A stretch of 64,000 nucleotides of DNA from Saccostrea cucullata (taxonomy: Eukaryota): positions 186,001 through 250,000 of the forward strand of contig NW_026931523.1 in assembly GCF_032062105.1 (NCBI RefSeq), given 5' to 3'. Numbering within the stretch: position 1 is the stretch's first letter; each line of letters opens with the position of its first letter. The notes below the pieces were generated by a model. It was not told the DNA's origin and searched no databases. It was given only the letters and a program-made list of their open reading frames with translations. The translations under genes and the position numbers were made by a program. Of the stretch, positions 7,746-51,355 are shown one piece after another.

Positions 7746-14202
<6,457 letters not shown>

Positions 14203-24165: not shown

Positions 24166-27100
24166 ATGCAACACAAAATATGGTTTTCTGCCGTCATCCT
24201 GCTCCTTTATGTGAAGGTATTTTGTATATATGTTTTTGAGATTTGTTTTAAATTTGGGACAATAAATTTTTACCTTGAAGAATCAGACATTTTTATGTTT
24301 TTATTTTGAGAGCTATAACTTATCTGTTATTGTTATATTTCTTTTTAGAATGGTTTTTTCCTTGATGATAGACATTGTTTCAAGTCTTTAGAGACTATGC
24401 AGATAGTCGAAAGCTGTCCTCGTGACAAAAACGAAATGGAAGAAGCTGCCAAAGAAAAAAACTGTTCACATCATGCAAAGAACCAAAGTTGTACTGTTCC
24501 AGAAAATTTCAAATATCATTGCGTTATTAATGTTTTCAGGAATCAGTCTATCGAAGTTTGCGCCCCAGAGAGAAAAATTAATGGTAAAAAATGTTGCAAG
24601 CTCATCTATAATAAATTAAAATGTATGAAATACAGCCCCGCACACTTTTTATAATAATTGACACAAATCAACGTCACATTGGATCTTTTTTTTTTTTTTT
24701 TTTTTTTACAATAAAACTGAACATTATTGAGCTTAAGAATGAGACATTACTCAGTAATGTAATTAATATATGTTTGGAAAGGTACATATTTTTGAATTTT
24801 ATTATCTTAAAGTTTCAATGTTGATGTTTAAAAGGGTGCTTTATTAATTAATGCTATGCTGTTATATCTGTATAATTCTACCCTAGGTATTTACAAATAT
24901 TAATAATTATAATCATTTGTACTATTAATTGCAATTTTCAAACTGAATTCTTGTATTTTGCTATGTACTTTGCAGATTTTTCATACTCCTCATGGTATTG
25001 TCGAATTGTAGCTCCAAAATTGACAATGCTGCATAAAATAATAGGATAAAAAAATACTGTTTATCATTTACAGTCTGAAAAGTCTGGGTCGTATCTCACA
25101 TAATGCGAGATTCAGAAAGTAGACCTGTACAAAAATGCCAGCTTTTTAACATGGAAAGCAGTCGAAAAGATGAGAAATGCTGTTATCATCTTGTGCATTA
25201 GTGTCATATTAATGTACAAAACACACAGAATTTACTTGATATATTTTAAAAAGAACGGGTACAAAGTCGGCTGCATTTGATAAGAAACCATAAAAACATT
25301 AGGGAACAGCTGTCATAATCTATCAGCCAAGAGTATATCAAAACCCTACCAATCATAATGTGTGAATTATGCTTTAAAGCAGTGAAATAAACTTGAGATT
25401 AAGTTAGAAATCATTTTAAAAATATATTTTTTCCCACGTAACATAATTTCGCATAATTAAAATTTAATATGACCATGTGAGTTTAAAAATTGCACGGAGC
25501 TGTATTATGATTCAAGATGTACATTTTGCGATATTCAAATATTAACTCATGTTAATTGGAACAGAATACAGTTTATTTTAACCACTTTGACAATTGTATC
25601 ATAAATGCATTTTTGTAATATTCCGTGTTTATTTTGATGTTTTATGTGGTTTTTAGGCTTTTGTGTAGAATTCAACCTCGAAGGTGCAAGAATACAAGAT
25701 CAATACCTCTCTGACTGTACAGTTTTAGACCCGCCTTGTCCAAAAAGATACAGTTCAACTGATGCTTATTTATGTAAGAACATGCCATACATACATCTGT
25801 ATATATTATTTATATGAACTTGTGAGATATGATAAAATTACGGAGAATAAGAGTACAATCTCAAGTACTATACACATTGAAGTGCATTTTAGTTTACATT
25901 TTAATGAAGATTGCATGATATCGAAACACCCTTGCTAGGAAATCCTTTTTACACTTTCAGAACATCATATATTTGTTGCTATTCACAAACAGTATATAAA
26001 GAATATTACTCCACGGTACAATTACAAGTACATTTTAAAATATTGTGACTTATGGTAAGCTTTAAAAGGAATAATACATACTAACAGGAATCATTATTTC
26101 TATTCACATTCTCTAGATCAGGCGTGTTATAAACACTCCTCGGTCTCGGCAAACACGACTACTGACGAAATTTTCTCTGCCGGGAGCAAAACTACATCGC
26201 CTAGTAATTTGTTGCCGGAAAGTGAAACTGACAATAAAACTAAGTGAGTTCTTATTTGAATGAATGTAACATGTACAATGATTAAAACAACTAAACGCTA
26301 ACATAAATATGAATTGTTTTTCTCATTATTTAACAGGGCATTGTGGATATCTTTCACAGTTTTTGGAATTATTGTACTGGTTGCCATTCCTTTACTTCTA
26401 ATCTGTCGATGGAGTAAATATTACATATCTTTCTTGGTCAATTAATAATGTTATAAGTCTATCAAGAAATATCTCAATTTCAGTTTTAACAACTCCTAAT
26501 GCATTGCGTAACAATAAAAATGATTTCAAGATATTTCATTTGTTCAAAGAATACACTATCATGATTACAAACATATCACTTTGATGTAAATAGGAAGAAG
26601 GAAAAATCGAAAAAAACGAAGAGCAGGTACTGGAAGTGAAACCGACGCAACTAATGGAAAAACAAAATCTGAAATAGGTAAATATCTTTGGTTTGTATAT
26701 ATGCAGATTCTACTTTTAATGGTTATTTCCATAAAATTCAATGTAGAATTTCATTGTGAACAAAGCTCTGAAGTATGAAAATTAAACATAAAATGTGTTT
26801 TATCTTTAAAACTGAACAAAAAGGAAATGTTAAGAATTGAATGATTAGCTGTTTATAGATTTAAATGAGATATCAAAAGTGTTTTAAATGATGTATTTCT
26901 ATTTATTTTGTAGAGGAAATGAAGCCCTTAGTTATGCATGATTTAGAGGGCAAGTATTTCCATAATGTGTTAAATCAAATATGTTTTATCTTTAACCCAT
27001 GTTTCTCATACATATTTATTTTTCATGTAAAAATATTTCACACTAATTAAGTTTACTATATAAATATTTATATTTCCAGACAAAATGACGAGACGACAAA

Positions 27101-30100
27101 TAAAAATGGGAACAACAACAGATAGATATAGTAAGAATTTCATTGAACAAAATATTTTTTTTTTCAGAATGTGTTTAATGTTAAATGTTTAATTTGAAAT
27201 AGAGAATGAAAAATACATTTCATAAGATTTTGGAAAAACTTTTTGTAAAAGAATTATATGGAGATCTCGAACAGTATTCAATATCAAAGTTCATAAAACA
27301 ATACAAAATAGGAGCAAAGCAAAAACGGACCTCCGAAACAGCGGTGGGATCAGGTGCCATAGAGGAGTGAGCATCCCCTGCTGACCAGTCACACCCGCCG
27401 TGTGCCCCTTGTCATGATCGGGAAATAACGGAAAATATGTCGTCAATTCAATGTATAACTAATAATATGTATGAAAAACACCAGTCAGCATTTGACTTAA
27501 TCATAAATTGTATTGTCTGACAAGGTCATTGTATCGACCATAGAATTTACGAAATGATAACTTTAAACGAGACTGCTGATATTCTTGTTTCATCAACTTG
27601 CTTGTCAATGTCAATAATTTACCTCGTTTTAGAAACTGTTCATACGTAGAGCATGCTCTTGCGTATCGAATCAATTGAGATAAATACACACCGTTTGCAG
27701 GTGATGAAGGTACTAGTATATGGCTGCATAAGTAAGGGAAGTTGACGATAGAAAATTTAAAGTCACCATGTTTATCATATAGCTTGGATGTCAGATTACA
27801 ATTAACGTCTATTCAAAGTAAAATATCCAAGTATGAAACAGATTTGTCAGATTCTGTAGTATCTTTTATCTCAAACTCTCCAGGATATATCGTATCGATG
27901 AAGTAATGGAAATTATCTTTATTGCCAATACGTCGTCGAAGGCCACAACAAAAGTTTTCTTATTTTCACGCAAACGATTGTGCAAAAAGTCTGCTTCATA
28001 TGAATACAAAAATAGGTCTGCTAATAATGGAGCGCAGTTGGCACCTTTGGGAATTCCAATAGATTGTTAGAAGACCTGGTCTCCAAAAACCACATAGATA
28101 TTGTCAATCAGAAACTAATGCATTTCTTTGATGTTAACTTCAGAATACTTGTGTGTGCAATCAGAGTATATTTCCTTGCTGTGTGACATTGTACTAACAA
28201 ACTACAAATTTTACTATTTTAGCATTTACAGCGCAAAAGTCAAAGGAAGAGTTAGCAGAAGAAAACATAGGTAAGTTTAAAAAAATTGAAGTCATCTGAG
28301 GTATTGCCTTAAGTGGGTCTTCTGATTAAAAAAAGTTTCCCACATATGTCCTGTCTGTCGTGTGCTGTCAATGAACTTTTCCAGATCTACAACTTTATCT
28401 CTAAAACAACTGGATCTTATCAACTAAATTCAATATTGTTTACATGAAAAGCCTTGATCTTTTTCAAGGTGAGATTATTAAGAATTATTTCAAATTCCAT
28501 GACATCTTCTTATCTTATTCTATTGGGCCTGTGAAAATGAAACTTATCTAAAAGCTTCATCACATAGAATAATTTTCAAATGTCTTCATATCATGCCTCT
28601 TTGGCTTGGATGATCCCATGAAGGCAATCAAAGTTTAACATAGGAATTTAGTGTAAAAATCATATTAAAAGAATCAATGCTTTCATATTTACATAGACTA
28701 TCCTAAGAAAGCTAGGTTATAATTAGATACAGTGTACTGGTTTTAATCATGATCTCCGGGAATTATAGTATGGACTAGAACGGGTGATTAAAGTTATTCA
28801 TAGTAGCATAAAGAAAATTTCTTTACAAAACTTACTATCAGGAAAATAAAATCCATAACCAGTCGTATAAAGGCGCATCATCGGGGAGAGGATATTCTAA
28901 TTTGTTGAAATCCTGACTCCCGGGGTAAGTGGGGCCTCATTAGAAGATCACAAGTATACGTCACCCATGTTAAATTGCATCAATAATAAGAGATGGTGAG
29001 TCAATTCTTTCATGGCGTGTGATTTTCAATCCCAAGGGGAGACTGATTCTTCAAATAAGATCCTTTAACTGAGGTCCCTTAAAAGCTTGGCGCAGTAGGT
29101 GCTGGCATGATCTTTTACTGCTCAATTGACTCGAGTGCCGAGTATAGGACAAAATTTACAATCTTCCACCCGCAAGTGGTAGGGTTTCCATTTGAATATT
29201 CTAGACAGGAACCTTACACGTCAAACAAAGTATAAATATTTTAAAATGGTTTTGGAATTTTGGAAGTATTTAGGATAATAATAATCAGCTTAATCTCAAA
29301 TTATTTCAGATGAGACGAAAAAATATTTGAAAAGCTACAAGACTTTTAATCGCTACTTTGTTGAAACTGAAATGTACAAATCTGCCAAATCATGTTTGGA
29401 AAAAAATAACATTGTTGTTATGATTGGAGCTTCGGGTTGTGGGAAAACTAATGCTGCAATTCACATGCTATTCGAAGCGGAAAAGGAAAACTGGGTTTTA
29501 CGAAAATTTGGATCATGGGAAGAATTTACTCTTTTAGATGCAAATCAAAAGACTGTCGTCTTTATCGATAATGTATTTTATGGAACTGATAACTACGATT
29601 TAGAAAATTGGTGGAAGGAGTTGGATGAAATATATGGAAACTATCTAAAGCAAGGAACACAGAATTCACATGAAGAGTCTATGGTTAAGTTGCGTCTCAT
29701 TATTACTGCTCGAGAAAATGTTATTGAAAATGCATGTCAGTTTATGAAAAGGATAACGCCCGTATTTAATGATACTTATCGGGAATACGCAAATAAATAT
29801 CCTTTAACCGACGAAGAAAAAAATGAAATCTTTCATAAACAAATTGAATTTGCAGAGAAAGTAAAACATATTTGTTCACCACCAGGTGATTGTCATGGCT
29901 TCAGAACAAGTATATTTAAAGCTGAGGGTCCAATTGGTTTTCCCCTTTGTGCCCATTTATACGCATGCAAAGAGGAATACAGAAGGCGTGGTGCTAACTT
30001 TTTTTCTCATCCAATCGAATTTCTCAAAATTCAAATAGAAGATGAAGTCCGTAACGACCAAACCTCTAAAACCAAAACCCTCTTTTTTGTCCTTTTTCTT

Positions 30101-31651
30101 TATGAATGGCATTTAAAAACACATGATCCACATGCAAAGCTCAATCCAGAAAGCGAAGTTGCATGCAGGCAATTTTTGAATGCAATATCACCCGATCTTA
30201 TGGACAATTTTAGCCCTTTAGATTTCAAGGAGTTAAAAAAGTTTGCACGTCACTTGTCTGGTTCATTTTTTATTGAAGTCGAAGGAGGAGGGTTTAAATT
30301 CGTTCATGACAGTGTATATGAGGCAGTGGGGACATACTTTTGCGAGCGTTATTTTGACAAAGTCATTCCCTTCTTTCCATTTGATGTGATTCAAGCTCAG
30401 GAATACACTTCTCTGAGAAAGGACCAAATATCAAAACTTGTCCTGAGATTTTTATATGAAGCGTTTAATCAAAGATTTTCAAAAGTTTTTGGATTTAACG
30501 TTTTTAGATTGAAAACTTTTTCGGATTGTTTTTGTGATGAACTAGAGAAAAAAGGAGACAAAGACATTGAAAGTTTTTTTTCTCTACAAAATGTCGGCTC
30601 TAACGTTAAACTACCCGTTTTGTTTTGGGCTAGTCTTAACAAGCATCATTATTTAGTAGATAAAATGTTTGGCATCCTCAGCAAACATAACATCAATACT
30701 GACTATCAATTTTATCTTTCATTGTATGGTGAATGCTGTTCAAGAAGTGAGCATATAGTGACAAGACTAAATGGAATGCTTTTCAATAATATGGAAGAAA
30801 TAAAGAAACGCGTTCTTGATTTTAAAGACGAAGAAAAGAACACAGTTCTACATCTTCTAATAATGTCAGAGAGATCCGACAGCACTGTAGCAGAAGCAGT
30901 GGAGAAATTGATTAGAGACAAAGCAAATATTAATGCACGCAACAATTTAAATATGTCACCATTAATGGTTGCTGTCCAGCAAAAAGCAGAAAGATCAGCA
31001 GTAATAAAAAGGCTAGTTGAAAGCAAAGCAGAAGTGAAATATAAGGATAGAAATGGAGCTACTGTTTTTCATCATTGCATGAATTCAGAAAATAATGATG
31101 AAATATGTGCCAAGAATTTAAAGCTTCTCTTAGGTGGAACCAAAAGTAAAAGGTTATTAAATAGTGACGACAACGATGGAGAATCGGTTTTAAACGTTGC
31201 TGCAAAACAAAACAAATATAGTAGGTTATTATGCATTTTAACTATTCTTGAATGTGAGGATGTCAATGCCTCTACATTAAATTTAGATGGATGCTCTCCA
31301 GTTTACAATGCTGTGAAGTACTTGAAGGCAAAATCTCTATTTAGTGAATTGGAATGTTGTGCAAGATTGATTATTTTCATTTTGTACGGAGTGAATCCGG
31401 ACAAAGTAGCAGACGATAAAACAAGTGCCAAACAAATTTGTTGTGCTGAATATAAACATGCCTTAAAAATTTTAAACAACCATGATGCAGAAGCTATGGA
31501 AAAAGAACTTACAAAATTAATTGCACTCGTTCAAGAAACAGTAGAAACGAAGGCAAATATAGAACTCCCAGATTGTTCTTCAAAATTGCCAGAAAGTATA
31601 AAATTGCTCATACGACAAGGAGTTCACTACTTGGCATCCGCTGAACTATAG
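24166..31651 (+). CDS. Receptor R1: type-I membrane protein with Cys-rich ectodomain and cytoplasmic STAND (nSTAND3-like) NTPase plus ankyrin repeats; ~1055 aa
   Basis: Exons 24166-24216, 24349-24583, 25657-25773, 26117-26243, 26337-26413 (TM ALWISFTVFGIIVLVAIPLLLIC), 26594-26677 (RRRKNRKKRR), 26914-26949 (GC donor), 27080-27130, 28223-28270, 29310-31651 give one continuous frame. Walker A GASGCGKT, Walker B VVFIDN, sensor LIITAR, GxP GFPL, MHD-like FVHD; ankyrin-like TVLHLL, SPLMVA, TVFHHC, SVLNVA, SPVYNA. Confidence 0.85.
27290..28170 (-). mobile_element. Penelope-like reverse transcriptase fragment (frameshifted), antisense in an R1 intron
   Basis: Minus-strand remnants GIPKGANCAPLLADLFLYSYEADF and YLSQLIRYARACSTYEQFLKRG...RLKLSFRKFYGRY, followed by the typical 3' tail. 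Confidence 0.85.
28320..28960. repeat. Degenerate satellite or Helentron-like repeat
   Basis: Recurring AATCATGATCCCCGGGG-type and GGGCC...TCAAAGTTTAACATAG-type units of the kind common in oyster repeats. Confidence 0.45.
28990..29230 (+). mobile_element. Decayed SINE
   Basis: ACTGAGGTCCC...TACTGCTCAATTGAC..GAGTGCCGAGTATAGG...AATTTACA core with a CAAACAAA tail; same family as 45918-46218. Confidence 0.55.
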
Positions 31652-32373
31652 TTCTCTTGCAGAAGTTAGTGATCTTCCATTCTATTTTTAGCATAATATT
31701 TGCAGAGGACATATCAGCGATTTTTGTGTTTATCGGCGAGTACTTCACAGAATATTTGGGTTTATATTACTTAAGGTAATTTGTAAACGAATTGGTTATT
31801 GGAGGCTTTGAAGAAAATTTTTAGACACAATTTGTATTTAAAAGTATTATTATGCATGTTAATGTTATGGATGTGTGCTACTTTAATGATAAAGAAATTA
31901 AAGAAATATTTTCAACGAAGGAGGTAGATATTTGTTTGCAATTATCTTTTTATAAAATAAGAATCAGTGAACTTAATAAAAACTAAACTTTATGACTTTG
32001 ACTTTTGTATCAACTTTTTGCATACTTTTGGAATAATCAGATATATAACTTTGATGGAAATATTATGCAAGCAAACGGGTCAGTTGAATGCATTTTAAGT
32101 GTTGAGATTAACAAAATATCCTTACAAATCTGAATAACTTGGTAAGCAAATATGTCATCAGAAGTTATTGGGGAAAAACACACCTTCAAGATTATTTATT
32201 TTATTTTGTTTAAATGTATTTGGCAAATTATATAAAGGGGAGATGGTGTCTCTATTATTCTATGCCTATAATACCTGAGCTTTTTAATTGGCCCTTTAGC
32301 ATTTTGATTTATTTACGTGACTGTACTCACTATGACCACTATGATATGCATCATTTTCCCAGAGTTTTAGTAA

Positions 32374-34339: not shown

Positions 34340-35375
34340 TTATGGTATGACCACAACATTACCAGTAGAAGAGTTTTCATCACTAGAAGGCAATGATTCG
34401 TCACTACATTTACTGTGGATTACCTCTAGATAAACGCTCGCTTTCTGCAATGACGATTGGTTTGATTCAGAGCTATCAAATGGTGGAAGACTACAAATTG
34501 GATCGAGATAGACGGGATCTGATGTATTTTCACTGGAATCATTTATCATAATTTTCTTATTTTCCAGTCCTTTGTACCTGTCAACAGCAGTTAATTCGGC
34601 TGTGCCGTATCTATTGCTAGTAGCTCTTTTTCGAAAACATTGTTTATAAAGATAAGTAGCGACAAAAACACCAAACAGCGTCACAAAAACGCCAACTAGG
34701 ATAAAAATTCCGTACAAAATAAAGTCCGCTTTCGTCTCATGCTGTTTTATTGTACTTATCATCTTGGTTGTTTGAAATGCAAGTTCTTCGGTACTCAAAG
34801 TGTTTTCAGATACAGCTGATGTTCCAAAATACCTGGTAGCTAAAAAAAAGATGAGTGAAAAATATAATTTTATATGTATGTTAGTATCCTGTATAATTTC
34901 AAAAAAATGTGTCTCTTTACTTCTCTGTTGAAGACATCCTAGTACAAAATCGCAAAGATTTTCTCTACATTTGCACCCGCCTTGACAATCTTCTCCAAAG
35001 CTAGGATATTTGCACCTTTCTGAGCAGTTTATATTATGGTAACCAACAGGACACTCTAAATTTAAAGCAAGAAATTTCTTTCTCTAAGGTTAAAAAAAAA
35101 CAAGAAAAACACCGAGGCATTATTCCAATTAATATTGATAAAAAGACCTACTCTCACACATTGCATTTTCTTTGCTCCAAAAGTATCCTGCGTAGCAAAG
35201 AGATATCTGACGACTAAAAAATGTAAAACGTAACATGAAAAATTACCTGAATATGCAAAAATGGAAATGAATTTCAGAGAATGCAAAAAATGAGATAACT
35301 GTTTTACCTGTCATTGGTGGAAAGAACAAATTTGCACACAATAAAAGAAAACGTAATTAGATTATATTTTGTCAT
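34340..35375 (-). CDS. Single-pass receptor E2 (paralog of E1); ~254 aa
   Basis: Exons (minus) 35308-35375, 35152-35213, 34921-35055, 34340-34839; internal exon sizes (62, 135 nt) and phases are identical to E1. CPVGYHNINCSERCKYPSFGEDCQGGCKCRENLCDFVLGC; TM FILYGIFILVGVFVTLFGVFVATYLY; tail DRYKGL, DPVYLDPI, SVYLEV. Confidence 0.88.
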
Positions 35376-37218: not shown

Positions 37219-38015
37219 AAATTTCACCTTGAAAAGGCATATAAAATATGTTTAATGTTCCTTATTTCTCCTGCCAGACAACTGAGCTTGATTTTTTTGG
37301 TTAAGTAGGCAAAAACAAACAAAATTATTGAAGTTAAAAAATGTCATTTATTGAAGTAAATGACGTAAAAGTAGTAAAACATACTTACAATACAAGAAAG
37401 GGGGTCAGGAAAGGGGATTTAAATATAAAATATTACATATCTTTATCACAATATTGTACAAACTGACCCCAAGCACTTAAAATATGTTTACTAATTTAGA
37501 AGACATTTCATAGGACATATCCTATTTTGACTGCGGATTATATGGACATCGTAACCTCTTGAATTTAAAACCTACTTTAATATATTTTACATGCTTTGAG
37601 TTTTCAGGTTGTAGGAATCTTATTAGGGTTATGTATATAAAAGTTAGCCTATCCATACGTGTACGGATAATACTAGACCGAGAGAAACATTTACTTCTGT
37701 ATTGAAGACCTAGATGTTCTCATGATCTTTGAACATCTGCCCCTGTTTTGTAGTGCATTGGTCACTTCTTACAATTCCTTGTCATGAACGTATCAAATCG
37801 AATGATCACAAGCCATGTAATTCTGAAAAATATATGTTTCCTATAGCTATTGTAAAAAGTAAAGTAAAAACACATCTGTATCGGATTGTACACAAATACG
37901 CATATATATAACTTTGAGTTCTGTATTGTTACCGCTCTTATTTGACAGAAATTTAAAAAGGCGGAAAAATGTCCATTTCCTTAAATATGCCATGCTTCAG
38001 GATTCTTTGCAAAAG

Positions 38016-41000
38016 ATGCAGATTGTAAGAAATATAAACACTTTTCTACTTTTGTCCATCAGTTTACACGTGAGTATATATCATTTTCTGGCATTCTTAA
38101 TTCAAGTATGGCTTTAAAGAACATTGAATTAAAATGATTTTTTAAATCATTTTTTTCAAATTAAAGAAGTATTCTGTACAGCATTAAAGAGTTGAGGGGA
38201 AAAAAAGAAAATGATTTTCAACTTAAAAAAGTATGAGGTGCCGTTTTCGTATTTGTTATCATTAATAATTTTAACTATTCGAATATTCAAATAGATAATA
38301 TCCTCTGTTCTAAATTGGATAAGTGATATCGCTTATTTGAATATGTGATAGCAACCTATATGCGTTTCCATAAATGCCAATATATATGAATTTAAATATC
38401 TATATTGGATTCCGAAACTTCATAAAAACTCTTTTAAATAAATATACATAACGGGTTCCAGTGCAAAGCCCATTTCTTTACTCCCCATTAAGATATTAAC
38501 AAATTGAAGGAGAAACTTCAGGCGTGCTGTGTAAGAAATGGTGTAAATCAAATGTGGATACTAAAAAATCTCAAGGAATTTTCGGAAAATTCGAAATCAC
38601 AAAATTTTCGATATGTTTTTCTGTGGAGTCGATATATTATTAGATTGACTGAACGAAAGGGATACACTCTTTATCTTATGCTTAGTGAGTTTAACAGGAA
38701 AAGCATTTGAAAATAATAAAAGCAAAATTGTAATTTTTATAAAGATATCATATTATAGAATTTTTGGATTTTTTCCTCAACCCAGTGACTTCACAATATG
38801 ATAATTGATTTTTTTATAATAAAGAATATATATTAAATAGAATGTTTTGTGCGTTGATCGATCATGTCAGTGGTCAAAGAGAACAATCGAAGATGTTACC
38901 AAATGCCCATTAACTGTTGAAGAAGTGGAAAAAGCCGCAAATATAAAAAATTGTAAAGCCTTGGCTCAAAAGCAGAACTGCACCGATCCTTCAAATTTCA
39001 AATATCATTGTGTGATAAATGAAGAAGAAGACTCACTGGTAGAGGTCTGTGCTCCAGCATACTACATTCATGGTGAGTAAAACATTATGTATAATTTAAC
39101 ATAATACACATGTAAATAAGGTGGACTAAAAATAATTTTGATAATTTTCACAAAAAGCAATCATAATCTAATACCATTTACTAATTTACAGGTTTTTGCA
39201 CAGAATTTAATGTGAAAGGTCTACTGATACAACCGCATTTCAGCATAAAATGCAACAATATTACACCATGCTCAGAACGTTATTTATCAACATTAGCATA
39301 TCAGTGTGAGTAAACAACAATTAAAACCATACATTTTTCAGAGTGGTTAATTAGTGAAAAAACACAAAGTTACTCATCAATAAAAAAAAGTGATACAACG
39401 TCAAGAAACCATTGTTTTTATTTTCTCCTCCGGGAAACCATAATACATGTATATATGTATATTTATGATATACAGATAATGTTATCTATGTTGAACAGAA
39501 TAGGTAACACTTTGTACATACACGATGCAATCATTTTTTTGCGTACTTAAATTAAGTGGCACTGTGCACTGCCTTACGTACGTCTCCATATCAAGCAGAT
39601 ATTTGAGTTTTGGTGCTAGCAAACATGACCAGTTTAATATACCCATAAATGATTATCAGTTGAAATTCACAAAATTTACAAACTGCCAACAAATGCAGTT
39701 CTGAAATTATGTTTATATGTAGTATAAATTTATGATCATATAGGTCACAGTACCTTAATTTTAAATTGTATTTCTACTACATCACATCACAATTCTTTTT
39801 TTTCAATTTCAAGAAACTGACAAATGAAAGTTATGCTCAAGAAGTAAAAAGACTGATTAAAGAAGCCAAGGTTTGATTTATAATGAGTGATAATATAATT
39901 ATTTATTTTATTTACATAATGAAGTTCCAAAGTGTTATGATGTGGTAAAGAAGCGTACTTTTTCCCCCCTGATTAATGAGACAACGACCATTTCATTTGA
40001 TTCATCTGACAGTGCAAAAGGGGACGGTGTCATTAAATGGCAAGTTTATGTTACCACACTTTAAGTTACAATTTATTTACACAATCTGTGCTTTGCAGAT
40101 ATAAAAAATAAACTTACTGTGTATGTTTGCAATATGCATGTGACATAACAAATTATACGATAACATATATAAGAACACACGCCATTGATATTTATCTTTC
40201 CCTACTTCACCTGACTGTGATGTTGTTAATGTGATATGTAGATTATCAAATTAGGCTTTCATGATTTAAAAAAAAAACAAAATGAGACAAAGATTTACCA
40301 AATAATCATGCATGTGCAAAATTGTTTCCTTCGGTTGATTTTTGTCTTTCAAACCAAACATGTAAAATCAATTTATACAAAGGTATTGAAAAAAATATCA
40401 TTCTCCTTCTTATTTTATCAATTTGATGTCATTTTATTTTTTCGACATGTTTTAGTACGTTTGATTATATGTCATCAATCATATCATGATATATCTAAAG
40501 AATCTGGGGGGATAAGTGAGTCAAATGCCCACAAGGATTTTGTCGCTCTGTAGGCATTTCGGAAATTTCATAGTTGTACGATTTACCTAAACATTTAAAC
40601 TTTGTACATCACTGTCCAAATGACAATATCTATATGTTAACAGTATTTTTAACGTGATGCTTTTCATATTGCGTGTTAATTTTTCTATCAAATGATTATG
40701 TCTTCAGGGTTTGGGAGATGGTACGCTTTACTTTTCCTTTTAACTGTTTTTGAATACAGAACAGTCATATCGCGCTGGCTACCCATGATTGAATTTGTTT
40801 ACATTTTAATCGTGTAATGCAGTCTTGAACTAAATGCATTTATGCCTCCTCCTTCCCTACCTACAAAATCAAAATTAGACAAACTCACAGGTATGTTGAA
40901 AAAAGTTTATTGATCAAAATATAATAAAATTTTTGATCAAATAAAATCATAAACTTGTACAAACTTTTTTTAAAAAAATAATTCCAGTATAACAAAATGG

Positions 41001-44000
41001 ATTTCAAAATGTTGATATATAAATTACAGTTTCCTTAAACAAAAATGGATTAAACATTATAAAATTGTTAATTCAGTTCCATTGTATCAAAATGGATGCT
41101 ACAATGTAAATTTGCAAATGAAGTTACAGTATCGCAAAGGATGGATTTGTCAATGCAAAGGAACATCAGTAATCCGCAAACATATCACATATAAAATCAA
41201 AAGAGTAGAATAATACAAAAATTACAAGAAACTAAATATCTGCTTGATATCCACAAAAATGCATAACATAATGAATATCTATAAAGCATGTATCAAAAAG
41301 TATCAGATAAGTGTATTTACACAAAAATCGACTAGTGGCAACAGGTTAAAATGTTATTTCACATGTAGATTGAAAACATGTTTATTATAGGTAAAACATT
41401 AATTGACCGTAAATAAATTCTTCATCTTATTTATTCATTTTGTTTTTTGTAAAAAAAAAATGTTTATCTAATTTTAACCTGAACTTAAAAAAATCGTAAT
41501 TCGAACACTCGCGACAGGTAACTGGTTGCTTCAACTCCGCCGCTATGACTACTGAGCCACGAAGTCGCACAGACATTTCCCTTTAAATAGCAAACAGTTC
41601 TATATATAGCAAACGCACAACTGGACTTAGAGTTTTTGAGAATATGTTGCGAAATTTAAGTAGGTAAACTAACTTTTTTATATAAAGTGGGTCTTCGTAC
41701 CATTTTTTTTTAAATGTTGAGAGATACATTCTTCCATACCCTTTGAATATTTGTTTACAAAAAAATGGTACGAAGACCCACTCCATATAAAAAACACAGT
41801 TTTAACATTCAATGTCTATCATTTTTACGGTTACTAAGTGTATAACTACTTTAACGGGTTAATTACAATCAATTTGTAAGTAATTTGATTCAAGTTTAAC
41901 CTTTACTGTATGCATACGGTTATAAATTACTCCCAAATTTAACAAAAAGAGGAATTTGCAAGATTTTATTTAATCGATATTTTACTTGCCCTTGCGTAGG
42001 CATATGACTCGCCTAATCCACCCAGATTCTTTATTCTAAATTCAAAGACGACTTGATAAGCAGCCTTCATTTAAGAGAGTGAATATATATATAAATGCCA
42101 TGCATGTGATATCATAGAAAGCTTTATTAATAGGTGGGTATTGCGCAGACTGTGTATTATACATGTACATTGTATATGGGGAAAGTATTTTGAGAAGCAC
42201 ACTACGTTTTCTTGTTCTCTGTAAGATTAGTAATTTCCTCTCTTCCCTTGAATCAATTTGTTTTCATTATTCCTAATTTGAGCTCTTCTTCAACTTTTCT
42301 TTAGGTACATATATTTCCTGATAGTCTTTGTAATCACAGCATGTTTTGTTTTTGTACCTGTCTTTGTTGTGTGCATGTGCGGATACCGCAGGAAGCAAGG
42401 TAATTTATTGCAAAGAATCCACTCGATGTATTTCATTTTAAAATCTTAAAAATGGAATTAAATGGATGTTTTTTTTAAATCAAATTAGGCTGGATGAAAA
42501 TTGCATGAATTATATGAGTTTATAAATATGAAGTTGAAGCATATGTATGTGTTTGTGAATCTGCGAATGCTTAAGCGGACTTAATTATAGAGAGTGAAAA
42601 AATTATACTTTGAAAAATACCTCTTCATTCTTGTGAAGATGTTATGACATCAAGCCGTTGAAAATTTGTTATTTTATTTCAGTTTCATTTAAGATAACAC
42701 TTTTTTTTACAGAACAACAACGAAATGACTTAAATGAAGAAGGTATTATGTAATTTATATATACCTGCAATAAATTATCAATCCTCAATGAGTCAAGTTT
42801 GTTTGATTTCTGGTTTTACTTGTAGTGTGTCACATAATACATGTATGAAGAAAAGAATTCTAAGTTGTGAAAAGTACAAAATTTTACTTTTTAGGTGTGG
42901 TATCCCAAGAATTGCTCCGAAAAGAGGCTAAGAAGGGTATGTTTATATTTTATTCATGCAATGATGTGAATTGTAAAGTAACAGTAGGAAATATACAAAG
43001 ATTTCAAGTTGTCCATGGTCGTGAATAACAATTCGTACTCAGAAGCATTTGTCAATATTCCAAGAGTGAAGTATGTATACAAATCATTTTCTGAATATTA
43101 AAACATACCGGTATATCATAAGATCAAAGATCTATCAAATAAAACAAACTTGAGTAAACGTATACTAGTTACAGGATGAGTTTACAGGAATGCAAGGTGG
43201 ATTGTAGTCATTTACAAATCGCAACCATGAATACATATAATTAAAATGAAATTAAACTTCCCATTAAGGGAAATAAAATTTCAAATTTATTTTTCTTGAT
43301 TACAGTGTAATTTTTTAAACGCGAAAGGTGATTAGTCTTTGAAGAAACTAATTTGTACCCCTCGGAACAATGAAACAGATCGCGTGTGCAGTTTAAAAAC
43401 AATTATTTGTAAATCAACATTTATAGTATTAAGATATTTTTTAAAAGTTCAGATATTTTTTTTATATATATAACTCGTAAATATTTTACTTACGGAAAAG
43501 AAAAGTTCATCTGTCCAAGTACTTTGATTATGTTTATAAGAAACAACGAATAATGTAAAACGATCTGATCTGTAATTATGCCTATAAAATTCATTATCTT
43601 AAAGTGAATTCTTCTATCAATATTTTTTGCAAATCTTGTCTTTAAGTTTTAACTTTATTCATAGTTGAAAATGATTTGTGACAGTTGAGTTTATTTATTA
43701 TAGGCCGCAGCAGCGGCCGATCTATTTGTGGTTGTGTTAGAAAGTGCACATGGGGAATTGAGAAGATATTTTTTATTAGTTCAGTAGAATAAGTCTTTTA
43801 TGATAACAAGTAAAAACGTAGTATTAATTGCCGATATTATATTTCAAGTTCATTATCATTTCTCATCAGATAATTGATAATTTATAGTTATATAAAAATA
43901 GTTTACAATATTTATACTCCCCGGCCTGGGTGTGTGTAAGATATGAAAGGAAATCGTCATGATTTTCCGGATTATAATGACGTGGTATAGAATGGTGCAT

Positions 44001-47000
44001 TAAAATTAAAAAAAAATTAACTTGCGAAAATTGTTTTGAATATGCTCTTCAGCTTCAAATGATAAAAAGATATATTTCTACATTTTGCTTTGCGGCTTGC
44101 AGCATAGCCAACTCTGCAGAAACCATGAGCATTATCACGTGGCCAAGATTCAGGGTATCAGCTGCACATGGTTCATCTTGAGAGGCCTATATATCTTCAT
44201 TTTGATGACATTAAAATATTATCATTCAGCAATGATTATTTTTTGTTTGTTTGGGTTTTTTTTTTACATCAATGGATCTATTTTTTAGCAAATTCGGTAT
44301 TTAAAATGTCCATTTATTGAATTCCTAAAAATTATTTACTTTGCTTTGAAGAATGAATAACAATGAATCAACTACATGTATTTCACCTTTAAATATCTTG
44401 ACGTGCTTTCCTTGCATGGGCCCTTTAAAACTGAAACGATCGATATTTAATTACTAAATTTTGTTTGCGGCCAAGTTGATGCTTTGCATCAATTACTTGT
44501 GTATAAATTGTTAATGATACACCACTGTCAGACATATTTACGATAAAATTTAGTTTAGAAGTAGGCTGTCACCAGTTTCACATTTTACACGTTTACCAGA
44601 ATAACAACATGAAGAGTAATTGCGATGAGAAGTGAATATAGGCAAACACCTAAGTGTTCACTTCTTGAAAGACGATACGCGGATGATCTACTTCTTTGGA
44701 AATACTTCGAGGGAAAATTGATCATCTGCATGAATCTAAACACTTTATATTGTTGATTTTCTGACATTAAAAAGATGATTTTGTGATACTGAAAAATCCA
44801 ATTGAATTTCCTTTATCAAAAAATGATTTTTTAAGTTTAAAATTCGAAGTCTTCGTATAAAAAGAATCCCGTTTATTATTTTTTGATGTCAGAAAAAAAG
44901 ATTTGTTAGATGTAAGAAAATTTTTTTGATATCATATTAGAGCAAGGAGTCTTTTTGTGAACACAGTGCTTACATTACCTCTGGGATTCTAGTGGATTCG
45001 GTAAAGCTAAATAAATTATTTTAATAAGCACTTTTTCTTTATTTATTATCGATTCTACTGGTTACTACTTTCATTGCTTGAAATAATAATAATTTTATAA
45101 ATATTTTGTGATCTTTCTTTAAATTTCTTTAGAAATAACTGACATTTCTTCCACTCTCTATATGTTAATATTCAAAACTTTATATCTGTTATCTTTATAT
45201 CAATAACAAACTTAGTTGTACTGTTCTTTTATTAATAATTTTTTTTTACAGAAAGACGATCTGAGTCCAAAATGGAAAGCGATAGTAAGCATTTCTTTGT
45301 TTCTTATGTTTCGTATGAATTCACCGTTGGTGAATGTAAAATATTTGGAGTTGATGTAATTGTTTTATTTACATGTTTCGTTTATAATAATAGACGATTT
45401 CTCGTTTAAATGAAATATTGATGTTCGTAAATTTACTTTTAATTTGTTGTATTCATTTTTGAATGATATCTTTAAACCTTAGAAAGAAACACATAACTCT
45501 TAAACAACCCCTCTTTTCCCGCCATTCAATCGCAGTGTGTTAGCCCCCCTTGTTCAACAATAGCAGCTCGATTTTTACGAAGCATTAGGTTTATCAGGCT
45601 CTTGATCTGAGCATAAAGAATCTTCTTATCAATTTTTAATTATCTGTTTTTCAAATACTGAAGTAGATTTTTTCTAACCTGGCCCAGTGTAGTAAATATT
45701 GAACGTCTGGTATTAAAACTGCCATTCATGGTTTTGAAATTCATGAGCATATTAAGTTGCTTTGTAGTGCATATTTGCAAAACATAATATGCAACTCTCC
45801 TTTACTTTAAGCTTTGAGAATTTAAAGCAAGAGCCAAAAATCAGAGCTTTCAGTAATTTTAAGGAAATACTGGCATCATATCGGGAAAAGAATTTTTTCG
45901 GAACAACATTACATTAATTGATTAATTGTATATTGATTAACGTCCAATTCGAGAAGTTTTCACACATATCAAGAAGTCTTCGTATACCGGTGAAGGGATT
46001 CACATTAAGATCTATACTCGGCAATCAGGGCCATTCAGCAGTTACGGTTCTTACGCTTTAAAGGTCATATCCTAAAACCTGTCACTTCTAATGCTGAGCG
46101 CTCGGTGAAGGAACAGTCATCAGCTATGTTTACGTTTTAGGTTTGACGCGGTGCTGCGATCGAGAATCGAACCCGGCCTCTTGATCAAGATGTGAACGCT
46201 CTGCCACTAGGCTACGGTTGAATATCAATGCAATATTATACATTTATTAACTGAGTTCAAGGGCAACATGCGTTTTGTCGGATCCAAGAACCAAACTGTT
46301 TGCCTGAGGCCGTTCGGCCGAAGGCAGACAGTTTGGTTGGAGGGTCGACAAAACGCATTTTGCTCGAGGGCAAGTCAATATATGTTTTGAAATACCTTTC
46401 ATTTTTTGTTGTTGTTGACACTCGTACATGTATTTTGTACTGTCATCGTAATGTAACCTTAGGTCCGTCACTTTCGAACATCAACGAATGAAACTGAGAT
46501 TAAGCTCCGCCAATTCTGTGAAATGACGGGTCCAACATCTCTTCGAGGGGTCCAACATCTCACCCAGCCGTTTAACATCGATTTTTTAAGACCGCTCAGC
46601 AAAACATTAGAAATATTAGACTTTTTTCCGCATCGATTTGTGTAGGAACAACATTTTAAAGGTTTAACAATATACATTTATTGAGTTCGAGGGCAACATG
46701 CGTTTTGTGGCGCCCAAGACAAAACAGTTCGGTTTAAGGGTCGACAAAACGCATTTTGCACGGGAACTTAGTCAATACACTTAATGTTTTGTGATATCTT
46801 TCATTTAATTTATTTTTCAAAATGTATTTTTTACTGTCTTCAGTGATGTATCATCAGGCCTGTCACTTTTGATCACCAACGAATGAAAATGAGATAAATC
46901 TCCACCCATTCTATGACTAAGAGGTCCAACATCTCACTCAGCAGTCAAAATCGATTTTTTTATGCTCGTTTAGCAAAACATTAGAAATGTTAGAATTTTT

Positions 47001-50000
47001 TCGAATAGATTTGTTTAGGAACAAATTTTTTAAGGCATTACAGCTACAAACCCTTGAAAACCTGTGTTATTTCAAATGTTTTTATCGAACATGCAATTTG
47101 GGATTTTTGTTAAGAGGCCTCAAAATCAATTTTGTTACTGAAGTGGAAATCATTCAATCTTTAAATTACTGATTCGGCCAAATTAAGGATGACCTTATTT
47201 TATAACCTTTATGCATGTATAATTTTCCCCTTGAAATAAGGATGTTGTGTTTCGTTTATGTTTCGGTCTATATATCATTTGCCTTTCATGTTACAGGTAT
47301 CTCAAGAGAATCGATAACAGATGAACTAGTAGGTAAGTTTACAATAATTTGAAGTTAAAAGTGCGTAATGTTTATGACAAAATATCGTTCTTTCCTCTAT
47401 AAAAGGGGAATTTTACCCATTTCGAACGTAATTTTTGATACTTTTTTTAAAAAAAAATGATATTGGATTTATCTCCAAATAATACCTGTCTATCTTTCAT
47501 CATTTAATTTATACACAATCAAATTTGAAGTAGAAATAAGTTTGGTAAAAAAGAAAAAGACAGAAAATAAACAAAGAACATATATGAAAATTTAAAATGA
47601 ATCTAATGTCTCACATTTTGGTATTCTTTCAATAGTTGTTGCTCCCGGCAGACTGTTGATAGACATGTATCACGAATCAGGTAAAAAATAACCATCTTTA
47701 ATTTTTTCAAATGTTAAGGTCCTATAGTTTTGAGTAAAATGAGAACTGTTATTGCAATAGTTAGTGAATAAACCATGATAATATGATATAAATAGTTCAT
47801 TTTGAAAAGAGGAGGCATGAAAATAGTTAAGTTCAATTTCTTACGAAGGAATAGGTGTATTTTAAAACCTCTGTACTTCTGCCTTTTAAACTCAACCTGG
47901 GTATGTTAGGGCTTCACTTGGATATCTGCAAAACATGTTATCAACTGAACTTAGTCATTTAGATGGTATTTTAAGCGAAGTATTTTATACAGGAGTGATA
48001 TCCCTTCACGAATGCAAAAGGAACATATAAAATTATAAAATATAAGTATGATTAAAATCAGATATACAGATTTATTATGAAATAGTTTTCCTATGATGAT
48101 GACAGGCTACGTTTTAAAATTTTACCCAGTATTTCCTCCACCGATTTAAACAAGAAAGATTCAAAAGTTCAGGATATTATGTATATTAGTTCTCATGCTC
48201 CGACAATATAGAAAGATTGTATTATATAGAATATGAAAAATGCTGGAAGAATATTATGACTAGTATGGCTTGATAAAAAATATTCCATCACCTAGGTACA
48301 ACATAAAACACTTTTTGATAGCTTTCAGTGGGCTCCAGGTTATTATTTCTGTGACCGGAGAGTATGATTCTAGCAACATTTTTCATGTTGTACGTAATTA
48401 TTTTATAAACAGAAATGAATATTTCCCGGGGTTTGCTAGACCTTTAACTTATCATGAAGGCATATTTTTCTATTTACAGACGTCACACAATGATATTCTT
48501 GTTCGATGCTCGTTTTTCCTCAGACTTATTAACGTGTGCATTGATAAAAATATTTCATGCTTTAACCATAGCTTAATTTCCCAATTAATCAATGCTGAAA
48601 CCTTGCCGAATAATGATCTGGGTTCTGCCATTACATACCTGCGTTTAACCTCAACTTCATTTATAAAGAAGTTTGCTCAAATTTGAAATAATTATTGTTT
48701 TTAACCACCAGGTATGTGATTTTGAAAGTGCAGGATCTTTTACGAACGAATACAAGCATCCTTTTATTGAATATGTGGTTCAGCACATCATCTTACTTAT
48801 CCATTATGAACAAGAATGCTTTTTCAATTGAAATGTTTAAATTACGTTTTATTTAAATAAACATTTTGTGTCATGTAGTTTAAATTTTAAGTTCAAATTT
48901 TGCTTTACTAGAGGAAGAAAGAGAACAGTATGCAGTGGAAAATGAAGGTTTGTAAAAATTATAATGAATAAATTTTAAATAATAATTTTTCAGTAAAAGA
49001 AAGCTATAAAGGAACACTAGATAGGTCCTAAAATATTGGATAAAAAGTAAAACAAACTCTTCCACTGATTTCGGTCTTAAATGTACATGTATGATATATA
49101 AATGAACTGTTAAAAGCATTTCCATGTTACAGAGAATATATAAGGAAATATTTCTTATATTTTTTTCTCTTTTTTAAGATCACACCAAGTCCTATCTCAA
49201 TGCTTTTCAACATTTTGAAAAATATTTCGTGAAAACAAAGGTATTTACAGTCTGTAAAAATAAGTTACAAACAGAAGGCGTTGCTGTTTTAGTTGGTCCG
49301 CCGGGTTACGGAAAAACTAACATTGGTATAGGCATCATGAAAGATGATGTTTACAAAGATTGGAAAAAGCGAAAAATAAAGTCTTGGGCAGAATTTAGAT
49401 TTATAAATTCAGAAGAGAATTCTCTCATTTATATTGATAATATATTTGACGGGTTCATGTATCATCATGAATTGGAAAAATGGTGGAATATATTAAATAA
49501 AACCTTCTATGATAATATTTCACATAATCCGAATGATGAGCAAGATGAAAGTGAATTTTTTGCAAATAAAGGAGGAAAGATTCATCTTTTTATAACCGCC
49601 AAAGAGAGTGTATTAACAAAAGCACGTGAGTACAACAAGATCAAGAGAACCCCAGTATTTAAAAGAAACTGTATTATAAATGTTACAGATTATGGCTTCA
49701 CAGCTACAGAAAAAGACGAAATCTTAGATAAACAATTTGAATTTGCAGAGAAAATATTGGATATTCCAAGGCCGTTGGTAGATCAAGAGTTTAGAAATAA
49801 AATGAAGGAATTAGTTGGTCCTATCGGCTTTCCACTTTGCGCTCATCTTTATGCGTGTGAAAAGGATCATAGAAATACTGGCATTGACTTCTTTCTTTTC
49901 CCGATCAATTATCTTCGGAAACAAATAAAATATGAAATTGAAGGTGATCAAACTCATGGCGTGAAAACGTTACTCTTATTGCTATTCTTAAGTGAATGTT

Positions 50001-51355
50001 TGTCTCTCTCAAATATATGTGTCGAAAAACTTAACATTAGTGATTCTGACAAATGCAAACGGTTTCTTGAGAAGAATTTTTCGGAGGAGATGCTTGAAAG
50101 CTTTGAATCTTTAAACTTTGAGGATTTAGCTACTGTTGCGAATAAATTAACAGTAACTTTAATTGGTAGTGAAACAGAGTGCATGTATCAATTAAAGCAC
50201 CAAATTATTTTTGATGCAGTCGGTTTTTATTTTTGCACCGAATGTTTCAATGTTGCAATAAAATACTTTCCAATAGGTGCTTTTCAAAAGCATGAATATA
50301 TAAATCCTTCAGAAGAATTTTGTGACATTTTTTCTTCTCGAATCATTGATGAAGTGCATAGTGGGAATGTTTCTGAAGCCCTCTCTTGTGTTGCACTCAA
50401 ACAATACCATTTTGCACAACGCGTTTGTGATATTTTAAAATCAAAAAATGATGTGGAATCGTTTCTTCTTGAGACGGATTCAGTTACGGTCTATCCTCTT
50501 CCATCTGTATTTTGGATCAGCAAATACGAGCATATTATTTTATCGAAGTTGCTTTATGAATTGGTTCAAGAAAAGGGTCTTCTAGTTGACCACACTTTTT
50601 ATCTAGCTCGCTTTGGTGACTGTTGTGCAAATGACGAAAATTTTCTTAGAAATACGGCAAAAACTGTATTCAATTCGACGACAGAGATTATGAATTGTGT
50701 CTTTCAGTACAAGAATCACAAAGGAATGACAGTGTTGCACATTGTCCTTACATCCGAAAGACCTGATTATGATGCATATTTGATAATTAAAAAGTTACTG
50801 GAGGACTGCAAGTCCAAAACGTTGTGTGATTCAGACAAACAATGTGCCGTTTACTTTGCTGCAAATGAAGTACGATACAGTAGAATTTTATGTATTTTGG
50901 CATTGTTTGATAGCAAAATAGATATTAAAAAATCTTTCCCAAATGACACATCTCCAATTCATATAGTTTTGAAACTAATGAATGATAATTCTCATAAAAG
51001 TGTTCCTTTTCAACTAGAAATGCTGATCCGTGTTTGTATTTTCATAATATATGGAGTGGATTCGAAAATGAAGAAATCAAATGATCGTCGGTCAGTAAAA
51101 GATATGTGCAAAAATACAAATTGCAAATATATAAAAGAATTGTTATGCTCAAACATTTCAAAAAGTCAAAAGAGAATGTCAGAGCTTATTCAAACATTGT
51201 TGAGAGAACTTCCTGTCAAGGACCGAAACGAGAAAGTGCTTGAGGAACATGTACTTAAATCTGAGGGGCGATTGGATAAATCGCTAAGAAATGCAATTTC
51301 TTTGGCTGTACAGCAACTAGCCGGATATATACATCTGTCGGAAAATGAACGTTGA
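38016..51355 (+). CDS. Receptor R2: paralog of R1 (Cys-rich ectodomain, TM, STAND NTPase, ankyrin repeats); ~1002 aa
   Basis: Exons 38016-38069, 38841-39072, 39192-39305, 39925-40039 (GC donor), 42305-42399 (TM YIYFLIVFVITACFVFVPVFVVCMC), 42713-42742, 42895-42936, 45252-45284, 47297-47332, 47636-47680, 48912-48947, 49179-51355 give one continuous frame. Walker A GPPGYGKT, Walker B LIYIDN, LFITAK, GPIGFPLCAHLYAC (shared with R1). The micro-exon set is less certain than the rest. Confidence 0.8.
38445..38610 (+). mobile_element. Penelope-like retroelement fragment
   Basis: Remnant KEKLQ...RNGVNQMWILKNLKEFSENSKSQNF, typical of the region N-terminal to the RT of the family seen at 27290-28170. 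Confidence 0.65.
41496..41561 (-). mobile_element. tRNA-derived SINE head (decayed)
   Basis: Minus strand CGTGGCTCAGTAGT (A box)...GTGTTCGAATT (B box); no full cloverleaf. Confidence 0.45.
41674..41794. repeat. Short inverted-repeat (MITE-like) element
   Basis: TTTTTTATATAAAGTGGGTCTTCGTACCATTTTTT ... AAAAAATGGTACGAAGACCCACTCCATATAAAAAA. Confidence 0.8.
45918..46218 (-). mobile_element. Near full-length tRNA-derived SINE
   Basis: Minus strand starts ACCGTAGCCTAGTGGCAGAGCG (A box) ... GGGTTCGATTC (B box), then a conserved body and a CAAT-type tail. Confidence 0.8.
46240..47040. mobile_element. Tandem pair of a hairpin-headed non-autonomous element
   Basis: Copy 1 (~46240-46670) has the hairpin GGGCAACATGCGTTTTGTCG..AAACTGTTTGCC..GGCAGACAGTTT..CGACAAAACGCATTTTGCTC; copy 2 (~46672-47040) has the hairpin tip deleted. 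Confidence 0.75.

Follow-up and report, generated by a model that had tools for sequence, protein, structure and literature searches.

Oyster genes that join a cysteine-rich ectodomain and a predicted transmembrane helix to an nSTAND3-ankyrin module without an adaptor domain

Two genes in the window (the whole analysed stretch of 64,000 nt of Saccostrea cucullata DNA) almost certainly encode an ectodomain, one transmembrane (TM) segment and an nSTAND3-ankyrin module in one protein. What is new here is the stripped-down form, one without TRADD-N and usually encoded head-to-head with a small EGF-type gene. Gene A (24166-31651) has 10 exons with all phases consistent; it is stop-free inside and gives a product of 1055 aa, in which a signal peptide, a 10-Cys ectodomain, a stalk, one TM helix, a charged linker, the nSTAND3 NTPase and ankyrins follow each other. 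Its parts are as follows.

24166..24216, + strand: exon 1, start codon and signal-peptide-like segment (conserved in S. echinata; RNA depth in one study)
24349..24583, + strand: exon 2, ectodomain Cys 1-6 (exon model, RNA)
25657..25773, + strand: exon 3, ectodomain Cys 7-9 (exon model, RNA)
26117..26243, + strand: exon 4, Cys 10, then the Ser/Thr-rich stalk (exon model, RNA)
26337..26413, + strand: exon 5, transmembrane helix (hydropathy 2.85; splicing seen in RNA)
26594..28270, + strand: span of the four linker micro-exons, all phase 1 (RNA joints)
26594-26677, + strand: linker micro-exon with basic patch (RNA joints)
26914-26949, + strand: linker micro-exon with GC donor (RNA joints; GC donor conserved in S. 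echinata)
27080-27130 and 28223-28270, + strand: the other linker micro-exons (RNA joints)
29310..31651, + strand: last exon, nSTAND3 NBD, helical domain, winged helix, helical region, ankyrin repeats and C-terminal helices

The sequence-only reading had proposed that the NTPase-ankyrin ORF of gene A, seemingly free-standing, is spliced in frame to the ectodomain and TM exons; assembled RNA contigs (not long reads) from two studies bear this out. A 977-nt contig from the first study spans 25657-29746, with exons 3-9 making up exactly 540 nt before the NTPase exon; a contig from the second study has identical junctions from exon 2 onward. The acceptor of the last linker exon was placed by RNA at 28223, not at the adjacent 28232, and the joint 28270 to 29310 was deduced from RNA contig positions, not from a displayed joint. 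The family is conserved and expressed in oysters, gene A at a very low level in the RNA runs examined; in two raw-read runs its exon coverage was nearly nil, with zero junction reads.

Could the fusion be an artefact, with a separate ectodomain-TM gene next to a soluble NTPase-ankyrin gene? RefSeq draws gene A this way: it splits the gene at the GC-AG intron 26950-27079 and leaves an NTPase-only model of 811 aa, just as the S. echinata orthologue is shown as a pair of models of 229 and 812 aa; also, many database homologues are about 780 aa long. However, the split coincides with a conserved intron that is spliced out in the RNA contigs of both studies, the S. echinata orthologue is open through all 10 exons, and the annotation gives full-length models for gene B and for homologues in C. 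virginica and O. edulis. We have rejected the two-gene reading of gene A; in general, an artefact of this kind is highly improbable. Short soluble isoforms may exist alongside the full-length receptor.

For gene B (37992-51355; 12 exons, 1010 aa) the model is identical to RefSeq LOC134232814, and in this model the long ORF, too, is joined to a signal peptide, ectodomain and TM. The third copy, expected to begin at 62589, is present as well (gene C): signal and ectodomain exons were found, with Cys 8 and 9 missing; the TM exon is just outside the window, and the NTPase exon, also past the window end, is broken by a frameshift.

37992..38069, + strand: gene B, signal-peptide exon (alternative ATG at 38016)
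38841-39072, 39192-39305 and 39925-40039 (GC donor), + strand: gene B, ectodomain and stalk exons (exon model)
42305..42399, + strand: gene B, transmembrane exon (hydropathy 3.06; RefSeq model)
42713..48947, + strand: gene B, linker of six micro-exons, phase 1, 30-45 nt each
49179..51355, + strand: gene B, last exon, nSTAND3 module and degenerate ankyrin region
62589..63575, + strand: gene C (signal exon 62589-62645; ectodomain exons 63138-63369 and 63459-63575)

The same combination recurs in the family. Twelve homologues reach 1000 aa or more, and every one of them has ectodomain and TM; some homologue ORFs are complete on single transcript-sized contigs. Of the 20 closest NTPase paralogues, 13 are preceded on the same strand, at a distance of no more than 55 kb, by an ectodomain exon. 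Similarity searches were run with individual exons and with full-length database proteins, and the joined translations served for frame checks, alignments and trees.

Hydropathy and the positive-inside rule predict that genes A and B encode type-I membrane proteins, in agreement with the sequence-only reading: a signal-like segment, one TM and a basic cytosolic side. In each gene a single strong hydrophobic segment follows the stalk (19-residue Kyte-Doolittle values 2.85 in A and 3.06 in B), and a K/R patch comes after it; 19 homologues carry 2-7 K/R after the TM. Ten cysteines stand at invariant positions in gene A; gene B has the same 10 plus one. The disulfide-rich ectodomain, stalk, TM and basic patch described earlier are present in both.

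The suggested nSTAND3 assignment was confirmed: Pfam nSTAND3 (PF20720) scored 64.9 bits in gene A and 49.6 in gene B against a curated cut-off of 27.2, and the C. virginica homologues XP_022295718, XP_022293622, XP_022294135 and XP_022294450 are rows of the published nSTAND3 alignment. Among the motifs listed earlier, GxxGxGKT, hhhhDN, ITAR/K (IITAR in A, ITAK in B) and GFPL are found in both genes; xHD is present in A (VHD) but absent from B (KHQ). GxxGxGK and the Walker B Asp are invariant in 58 sequences, and Walker A, sensor-1 and GxP are strictly conserved. In 164 of 165 matches Walker B reads DN, with Asn instead of the second acid, which suggests a binding switch with slow hydrolysis; in the bacterial nSTAND3 protein Avs5, Walker B has a single acid and supports binding, not hydrolysis (bioRxiv 10.1101/2025.07.08.663546).

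In the AlphaFold model of the gene A cytosolic part (pLDDT 87), NBD, helical domain, winged helix and repeats are intact. Residues 1-363 gave MalT (PDB 8bob) as the best solved-structure match in a wide structure search (Z 14.2, rmsd 4.1, 287 aligned); this alignment over NBD-HD-WHD, together with the motifs, places the NTPase in the STAND class, as had been supposed. MalT itself, at 8% identity, is a soluble bacterial transcription activator with a TPR-like sensor and HTH output. The ankyrin fold reached Z up to 18.9; Foldseek and a standard structure search with the whole cytosolic model returned ankyrin proteins only, MalT surfacing only in the wide search. Ankyrins of gene A scored 42.6 bits with Ank_2, while those of gene B are below the Pfam threshold, degenerate yet alignable to A; ankyrin dN/dS between two Saccostrea species is 0.15 and 0.33. 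The genome holds at least 94 nSTAND3-like matches, and PADLOC gave a weak PDC-S73 match only. NACHT, NB-ARC and LRR had no match in genes A or B at E 0.1. The label ‘NLR-like’ therefore stands for the STAND switch and fails for NACHT/NB-ARC and LRR; judged by domain content, the predicted proteins are NLR-like without being NLRs in the strict sense.

The claim that no death-fold effector is present also holds. Gene A has about 60 low-complexity residues between the TM and the pre-NBD helix, the linker is short and variable, and the parts scanned had no Pfam match; a TIR, CC or enzymatic effector is likewise lacking there. A death fold hidden in the linker was considered and rejected, since the linker leaves no space for one. 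Across the 19 full-length homologues measured, the linker was always too short for a DED or alpha-rich region plus TRADD-N.

The ectodomain is the best-conserved region (mean identity 50% versus 18% for the linker), with dN/dS of 0.19 and 0.27 between two Saccostrea species; many of its surface residues are invariant too. No diversifying selection on ectodomain or ankyrins was seen between the two species, so pathogen sensing is without direct support. Pfam assigned the ectodomain to no family, Foldseek found nothing at E 0.001, the best VIA-align structure match had Z 2.0 among 48,161 chains, and matches in the Atlas were unnamed molluscan clusters or nSTAND3 proteins only. Absent Pfam and PDB matches do not prove a new fold; the ectodomain appears to be an oyster-specific outer domain. 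S. cucullata has at least 150 genomic copies of it. Ectodomain plus TM with short tails accounts for 75 of the best 150 matches; other tails are AIG1 GTPase, HSP70-like (by eye) and nSTAND3-ANK. The ectodomain tree and the NTPase tree disagree, suggesting swapping of modules. In three oyster genera the family has expanded while staying under purifying selection.

Each of genes A and B has a divergently transcribed neighbor.

19728..21262, - strand: small EGF-like/stalk/TM/Tyr-motif-tail gene (MEGF10/SREC-like, about 325 aa; in-frame 4-exon model), head-to-head with gene A
34340..35375, - strand: second small EGF-like/TM gene, head-to-head with gene B (exon limits approximate)

The first has an S. 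echinata orthologue in the same position, and the arrangement at gene B is repeated in O. edulis and S. echinata; in total, 8 of the 10 loci that could be tested have a head-to-head EGF/TM partner, as do these two other oyster species. Duplication of a single block may have passed the pairing on. Contigs that hold both EGF and ectodomain genes are common in any case. Plants have head-to-head sensor/helper NLR pairs (RRS1/RPS4, RGA4/RGA5), likewise a divergent, conserved gene pair beside a STAND gene. This is an analogy only: the plant partner is a STAND protein, whereas the oyster partner is a small EGF-type membrane protein whose functional link is putative.

The implied novelty of the receptor type was overstated. 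Kaur et al. 2021 (PMC8195603) listed oyster proteins with TM, cysteine-rich region, TM, TRADD-N, nSTAND3 and ankyrin, and named nSTAND3 after such bivalve proteins; membrane NLRs have been reported as well (PMC5094078). Given that listing and the homologues in the nSTAND3 alignment, we regard genes A and B as a variant within this receptor type, not a separate category. Both they and the Crassostrea NCOA6-clade TRADD-N receptors occur in oysters and combine a Cys-rich ectodomain and TM with cytosolic nSTAND3 and ankyrins, and both come with similar alternative tails (AIG GTPase, HSP70). In contrast, TM and NTPase of genes A and B are connected by just a linker of about 60-180 aa, with neither DED nor alpha-rich region nor TRADD-N; the proteins are about 1000 aa long with Walker B DN, and the Kaur receptors are 2660 aa with Walker B DD. 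The sole PF13820 (TRADD-N) match in the genome sits on another contig, and the Kaur LOC ids are absent among the named ectodomain matches, compared by id, not by sequence. Avs5 (Sir2-nSTAND3-TPR) shares with genes A and B the nSTAND3 class and the single-acid Walker B, but it is soluble with an enzymatic N-terminal effector, where A and B have a TM helix and ectodomain. Among animals, the anthozoan TM-containing NLRs (PMC5094078) are likewise STAND receptors with a predicted membrane anchor, formed by TM segments at the N-terminus. They have a NACHT-LRR composition and a cluster of 3-5 TM helices, unlike the nSTAND3-ankyrin proteins with signal peptide, folded ectodomain and one TM described here. 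No description of a direct ectodomain-TM-nSTAND3 fusion without adaptor was found in the literature searched, the coverage of which was incomplete.

We tentatively favor outside-in signaling by clustering, with output supplied in trans (probability roughly 0.45). The ectodomain would receive the input: a multivalent ligand or partner, once bound, would cluster the receptors, and clustering would favor ATP-bound STAND oligomers. As there is no fused effector, the output would have to come in trans, recruited through the oligomer or ankyrin surface or, alternatively, supplied by the Tyr-motif tail of the head-to-head EGF-type receptor. A constant outer module with an exchanged inner module resembles receptor families; this modular use of the ectodomain leans toward outside-in over inside-out signaling. 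Family context would point to a role in immunity or cell recognition. STAND proteins that have been characterized sense through their C-terminal repeats and deliver the output from the N-terminal slot, an order that argues for the opposite direction; furthermore, a floppy linker offers no obvious way to relieve repeat-mediated autoinhibition. External triggering was proposed for the related TRADD-N receptors by Kaur et al. 2021 (PMC8195603).

One could also imagine the reverse direction: ankyrins would sense a cytosolic cue, and the STAND oligomer would cluster TM and ectodomain into a surface danger or eat-me signal, read, e.g., by the EGF-type (CED-1/MEGF10-like) receptor encoded head-to-head. 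Such inside-out display keeps the canonical effector-NTPase-sensor order with all its domains intact; the conserved ectodomain suits a host partner, and the EGF/TM pairing fits as well. However, most ectodomain proteins have no STAND module, and thus the ectodomain works without such clustering; conserved ankyrins, degenerate in gene B, likewise tell against it; the pairing could come from block duplication or from the general co-occurrence of the two gene types. We consider this direction unlikely, although the strongest of the competitors. One step further, and rather doubtful, is a two-gene trans-membrane STAND system, where a cytosolic or extracellular cue would cluster the ectodomains, which would have a new fold, and the EGF-type protein would bind them, acting as effector via its tyrosine motifs.

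It is less probable still that ectodomain and TM only anchor a STAND-ankyrin sensor to a membrane, that of the cell or the phagosome, from where it would signal by co-oligomerizing with effector-bearing STAND or TRADD-N/death-domain proteins, as a sensor NLR does with its helper. The absence of a fused effector, the existence of related receptors in oysters that carry DED, TRADD-N or Death domains, the abundance of nSTAND3-like matches and ectodomains that appear exchangeable among NTPase clades would all fit; yet a plain anchor has no need of 10 invariant cysteines and many invariant surface residues, and no helper protein was identified. Receptors that have lost the adaptor and death domains of their relatives, and the second Walker B acid, might also act as decoys or brakes that compete for ligand, or for places in the oligomer, with TRADD-N/death-domain receptors and damp their signaling. 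The strict conservation of Walker A, sensor-1 and GxP and the expansion under purifying selection make this quite improbable.

STAND/NLR proteins are regarded as cytosolic sensors with an N-terminal effector. Computational work of 2021 had already anticipated the concept of a membrane-spanning form, so the surprise is limited; still, a folded ectodomain in the effector slot provides a minimal test of whether a STAND switch is driven from outside or signals outward. Annotation splits some family members at GC-AG introns, thereby hiding them. The two-gene system, if true, would be an animal STAND switch signaling across the membrane without a death fold, and farmed oysters may have a major surface-recognition repertoire in the unnamed ectodomain family.

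When gene models were built up again from the sequence, the claim of the sequence-only reading that NTPase ORFs are joined in frame to ectodomain and TM exons was borne out for genes A and B: the gene A model is stop-free, with exons of consistent phase, and gene B is identical to RefSeq LOC134232814. The NTPase ORF of gene A (29327-31651) has a 100% match to a Saccostrea cucullata RefSeq protein. The third copy, placed by the same reading at 62589, exists as gene C; its NTPase exon, ∼14 kb beyond its TM exon, is broken by a frameshift, either genuine or introduced in assembly. The features of the window are as follows:

12500-14203 (+), 3′ exons of a thiolase (acetyl-CoA acetyltransferase-like) gene, recognized by eye from C-terminal motifs
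14895-15600 (-), C1q-domain gene (Pfam C1q)
16471-18140 (+), related C1q-domain gene (Pfam C1q), 69% DNA identity to the former
19728-21262 (-), EGF gene, head-to-head with gene A
22326-22524 (-), degenerate inverted fragment between EGF gene and gene A, 81% identical over 207 nt to the intron end and start of the gene A NTPase exon
24166-31651 (+), gene A, 10 exons, 1055 aa
26950, GC-AG intron of gene A, conserved in S. echinata
27234-28165, high-copy repeat in the intron preceding the last linker exon of gene A
34340-35375 (-), EGF gene, head-to-head with gene B
37992-51355 (+), gene B, 12 exons, 1010 aa
40040, GC-AG intron of gene B, conserved in S. echinata
59653-61157, element of ∼1.5 kb with 190-nt inverted ends (85% identical), built of A/T-rich 23-bp units in tandem; resembles a non-autonomous transposon
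62589 (+), start of gene C, TM exon just outside the window
63459-63575, part of gene C where ectodomain Cys 8 and Cys 9 are both absent

The joint loss of Cys 8 and Cys 9 suggests that they may form one disulfide.

RNA reads and contigs were aligned over 24050-30000, which takes in gene A from its start into the NTPase exon. Six of its GT-AG or GC-AG joints were found in both X1 and X2, contig sets from two studies (short-read assemblies of depth ∼6, not long reads). In record 2 of X1, exon 3 occupies positions 1-117, exon 4 118-244, and the NTPase exon starts at 541; the seven exons upstream of the latter sum to 540 nt, an exact fit. Two raw-read runs gave almost no coverage of exons in this region; the repeat at 27234-28165 had very high depth, coming from other copies, and a similar element sits elsewhere in the S. 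echinata gene A locus.

RefSeq presents gene A as an NTPase-only protein of 811 aa and its S. echinata orthologue as two genes (229 and 812 aa) 106 nt apart. Since the split falls at a GC donor kept in both Saccostrea species and spliced in RNA, and the S. echinata orthologue reads open through all ten exons, it is most likely an annotation artefact. The same splicing speaks against gene A being an ectodomain-TM gene followed by a separate NTPase gene. Read-through of the intron at 26950 would yield a short ectodomain-TM form.

Both NTPases, A and B, score above the Pfam cut-off for nSTAND3, so that this family holds as the best fit. An AlphaFold model of the cytosolic part of gene A (pLDDT 87) aligns over residues 1-363 with MalT, a soluble bacterial STAND protein (Z 14.2, rmsd 4.1, 287 aligned), the remainder aligning with ankyrin proteins. 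Neither NTPase matched NACHT or NB-ARC in Pfam, so that of the label ‘NLR-like’ the likeness stands, but the genes are nSTAND3 members outside the strict NLR definition. Walker A, sensor-1 and GxP are all retained; of 165 matches, 164 have hhhhDN as Walker B. The bacterial nSTAND3 protein Avs5 likewise has a single-acid Walker B, used more for binding ATP than for hydrolysing it (bioRxiv 10.1101/2025.07.08.663546); by analogy, the oyster NTPases might be slow switches. The TM-to-Walker A linker is charged, weakly conserved and 61-180 aa long with the pre-NBD helix counted in, and therefore leaves no room for a death fold, in agreement with the earlier claim that such an effector is absent.

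The fusion is not peculiar to this window. The first search gave 12 homologues of ≥1000 aa, every one with the ectodomain and TM helix and none with another N-terminus; public runs contain contigs of 3-4.5 kb that each hold a full-length ORF, and RefSeq has full-length models for Crassostrea virginica, Ostrea edulis and S. echinata. Among the 20 closest NTPase paralogues in the S. cucullata genome, 13 have a same-strand ectodomain exon ≤55 kb upstream, with ∼2% per locus expected by chance (719 candidate sites scattered evenly over 1.17 Gb), a comparison weakened by tandem clustering. Other ectodomain-nSTAND3 loci lie on contigs C22917, C2478, C1223, C17084, C9469, C1617, C8529 and C5275 of this genome (G000).

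The ectodomain (∼120 aa, 10 invariant Cys) has a confidently predicted fold (pLDDT 84) and no match in Pfam or PDB; its look-alikes in Atlas are molluscan without exception. There are at least 150 copies in the S. cucullata genome and 1238 representative clusters in a large library. A TM is present in 106 of the top 150 ectodomain proteins; the tails of these 106 are shorter than 120 aa in 75, nSTAND3/ankyrin in 6, AIG1 GTPase in 1 and, judged by eye, HSP70-like in 3. Proteins P0150, P0156, P0164 and P0166 share the ectodomain, TM and a cytosolic domain of ∼150 aa, which had no Pfam match in the three scanned and could be divergent TRADD-N-like or new. The ectodomain and NTPase trees conflict, which suggests swapping between the two; P0313 (one contig, possibly chimeric), P0140 and P0326 have a B-type NTPase with the other group's ectodomain. 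Comparison of the two Saccostrea species shows purifying selection on the ectodomain (dN/dS 0.19, 0.27) and likewise on the ankyrins (0.15, 0.33), with drift in stalk and linker.

Judged from sequence, these proteins have receptor topology, an intact STAND core, a flexible linker and no fused effector; with such a linker, a signal would cross only by clustering, whichever its direction. We tentatively favour outside-in signalling (probability ∼0.45) because, in a large family whose tails can be exchanged, the ectodomain-TM unit stays constant. Inside-out display would preserve the usual STAND polarity and be compatible with a conserved host partner; we consider it less likely. A tethered sensor dependent on a helper seems more doubtful still, and a decoy very improbable.

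The EGF gene, a neighbour absent from the sequence-only reading, is small; its product is EGF-like, with a single TM and tyrosine motifs in its tail. Such a gene stands head-to-head at 8 of 10 testable S. cucullata receptor loci, being absent at gene C and within 10 kb on C1617. The same pairing was seen at the S. echinata orthologues of A and B and at both O. edulis loci examined; a third S. echinata receptor locus had no EGF gene within 10 kb. EGF copies share only ∼30-50% identity, which makes the pairing an old one. A shared promoter, a functional partnership or simply inheritance of a single duplicated block may lie behind it; the paired loci do not count as independent, and on many contigs EGF genes co-occur with ectodomain genes in other orientations too. 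On C22917 the pairs form a tandem array.

A design of this kind was described from C. virginica by Kaur et al. 2021 (PMC8195603): an extracellular Cys-rich domain is followed by TM, DED/TRADD-N and a tail that varies, STAND NTPases and ankyrins being among the tails; their supplement lists a form ending in nSTAND3+Ankyrin, and nSTAND3 was defined by these bivalve proteins. Among the rows of their nSTAND3 alignment are the homologues that genes A and B have in C. virginica, of whose architecture we found no description. TM, nSTAND3 and ankyrins are common to both designs, behind Cys-rich regions that may or may not be homologous; the Kaur proteins, however, carry DED/TRADD-N after the TM, whereas the linker of genes A and B has no death fold. 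Anthozoans are reported to have NACHT-LRR proteins with multiple TM (PMC5094078), unlike genes A and B with nSTAND3 and no NACHT match. Since these forms have already been reported, genes A and B represent a known design in a variant that is real and apparently has not been described before.
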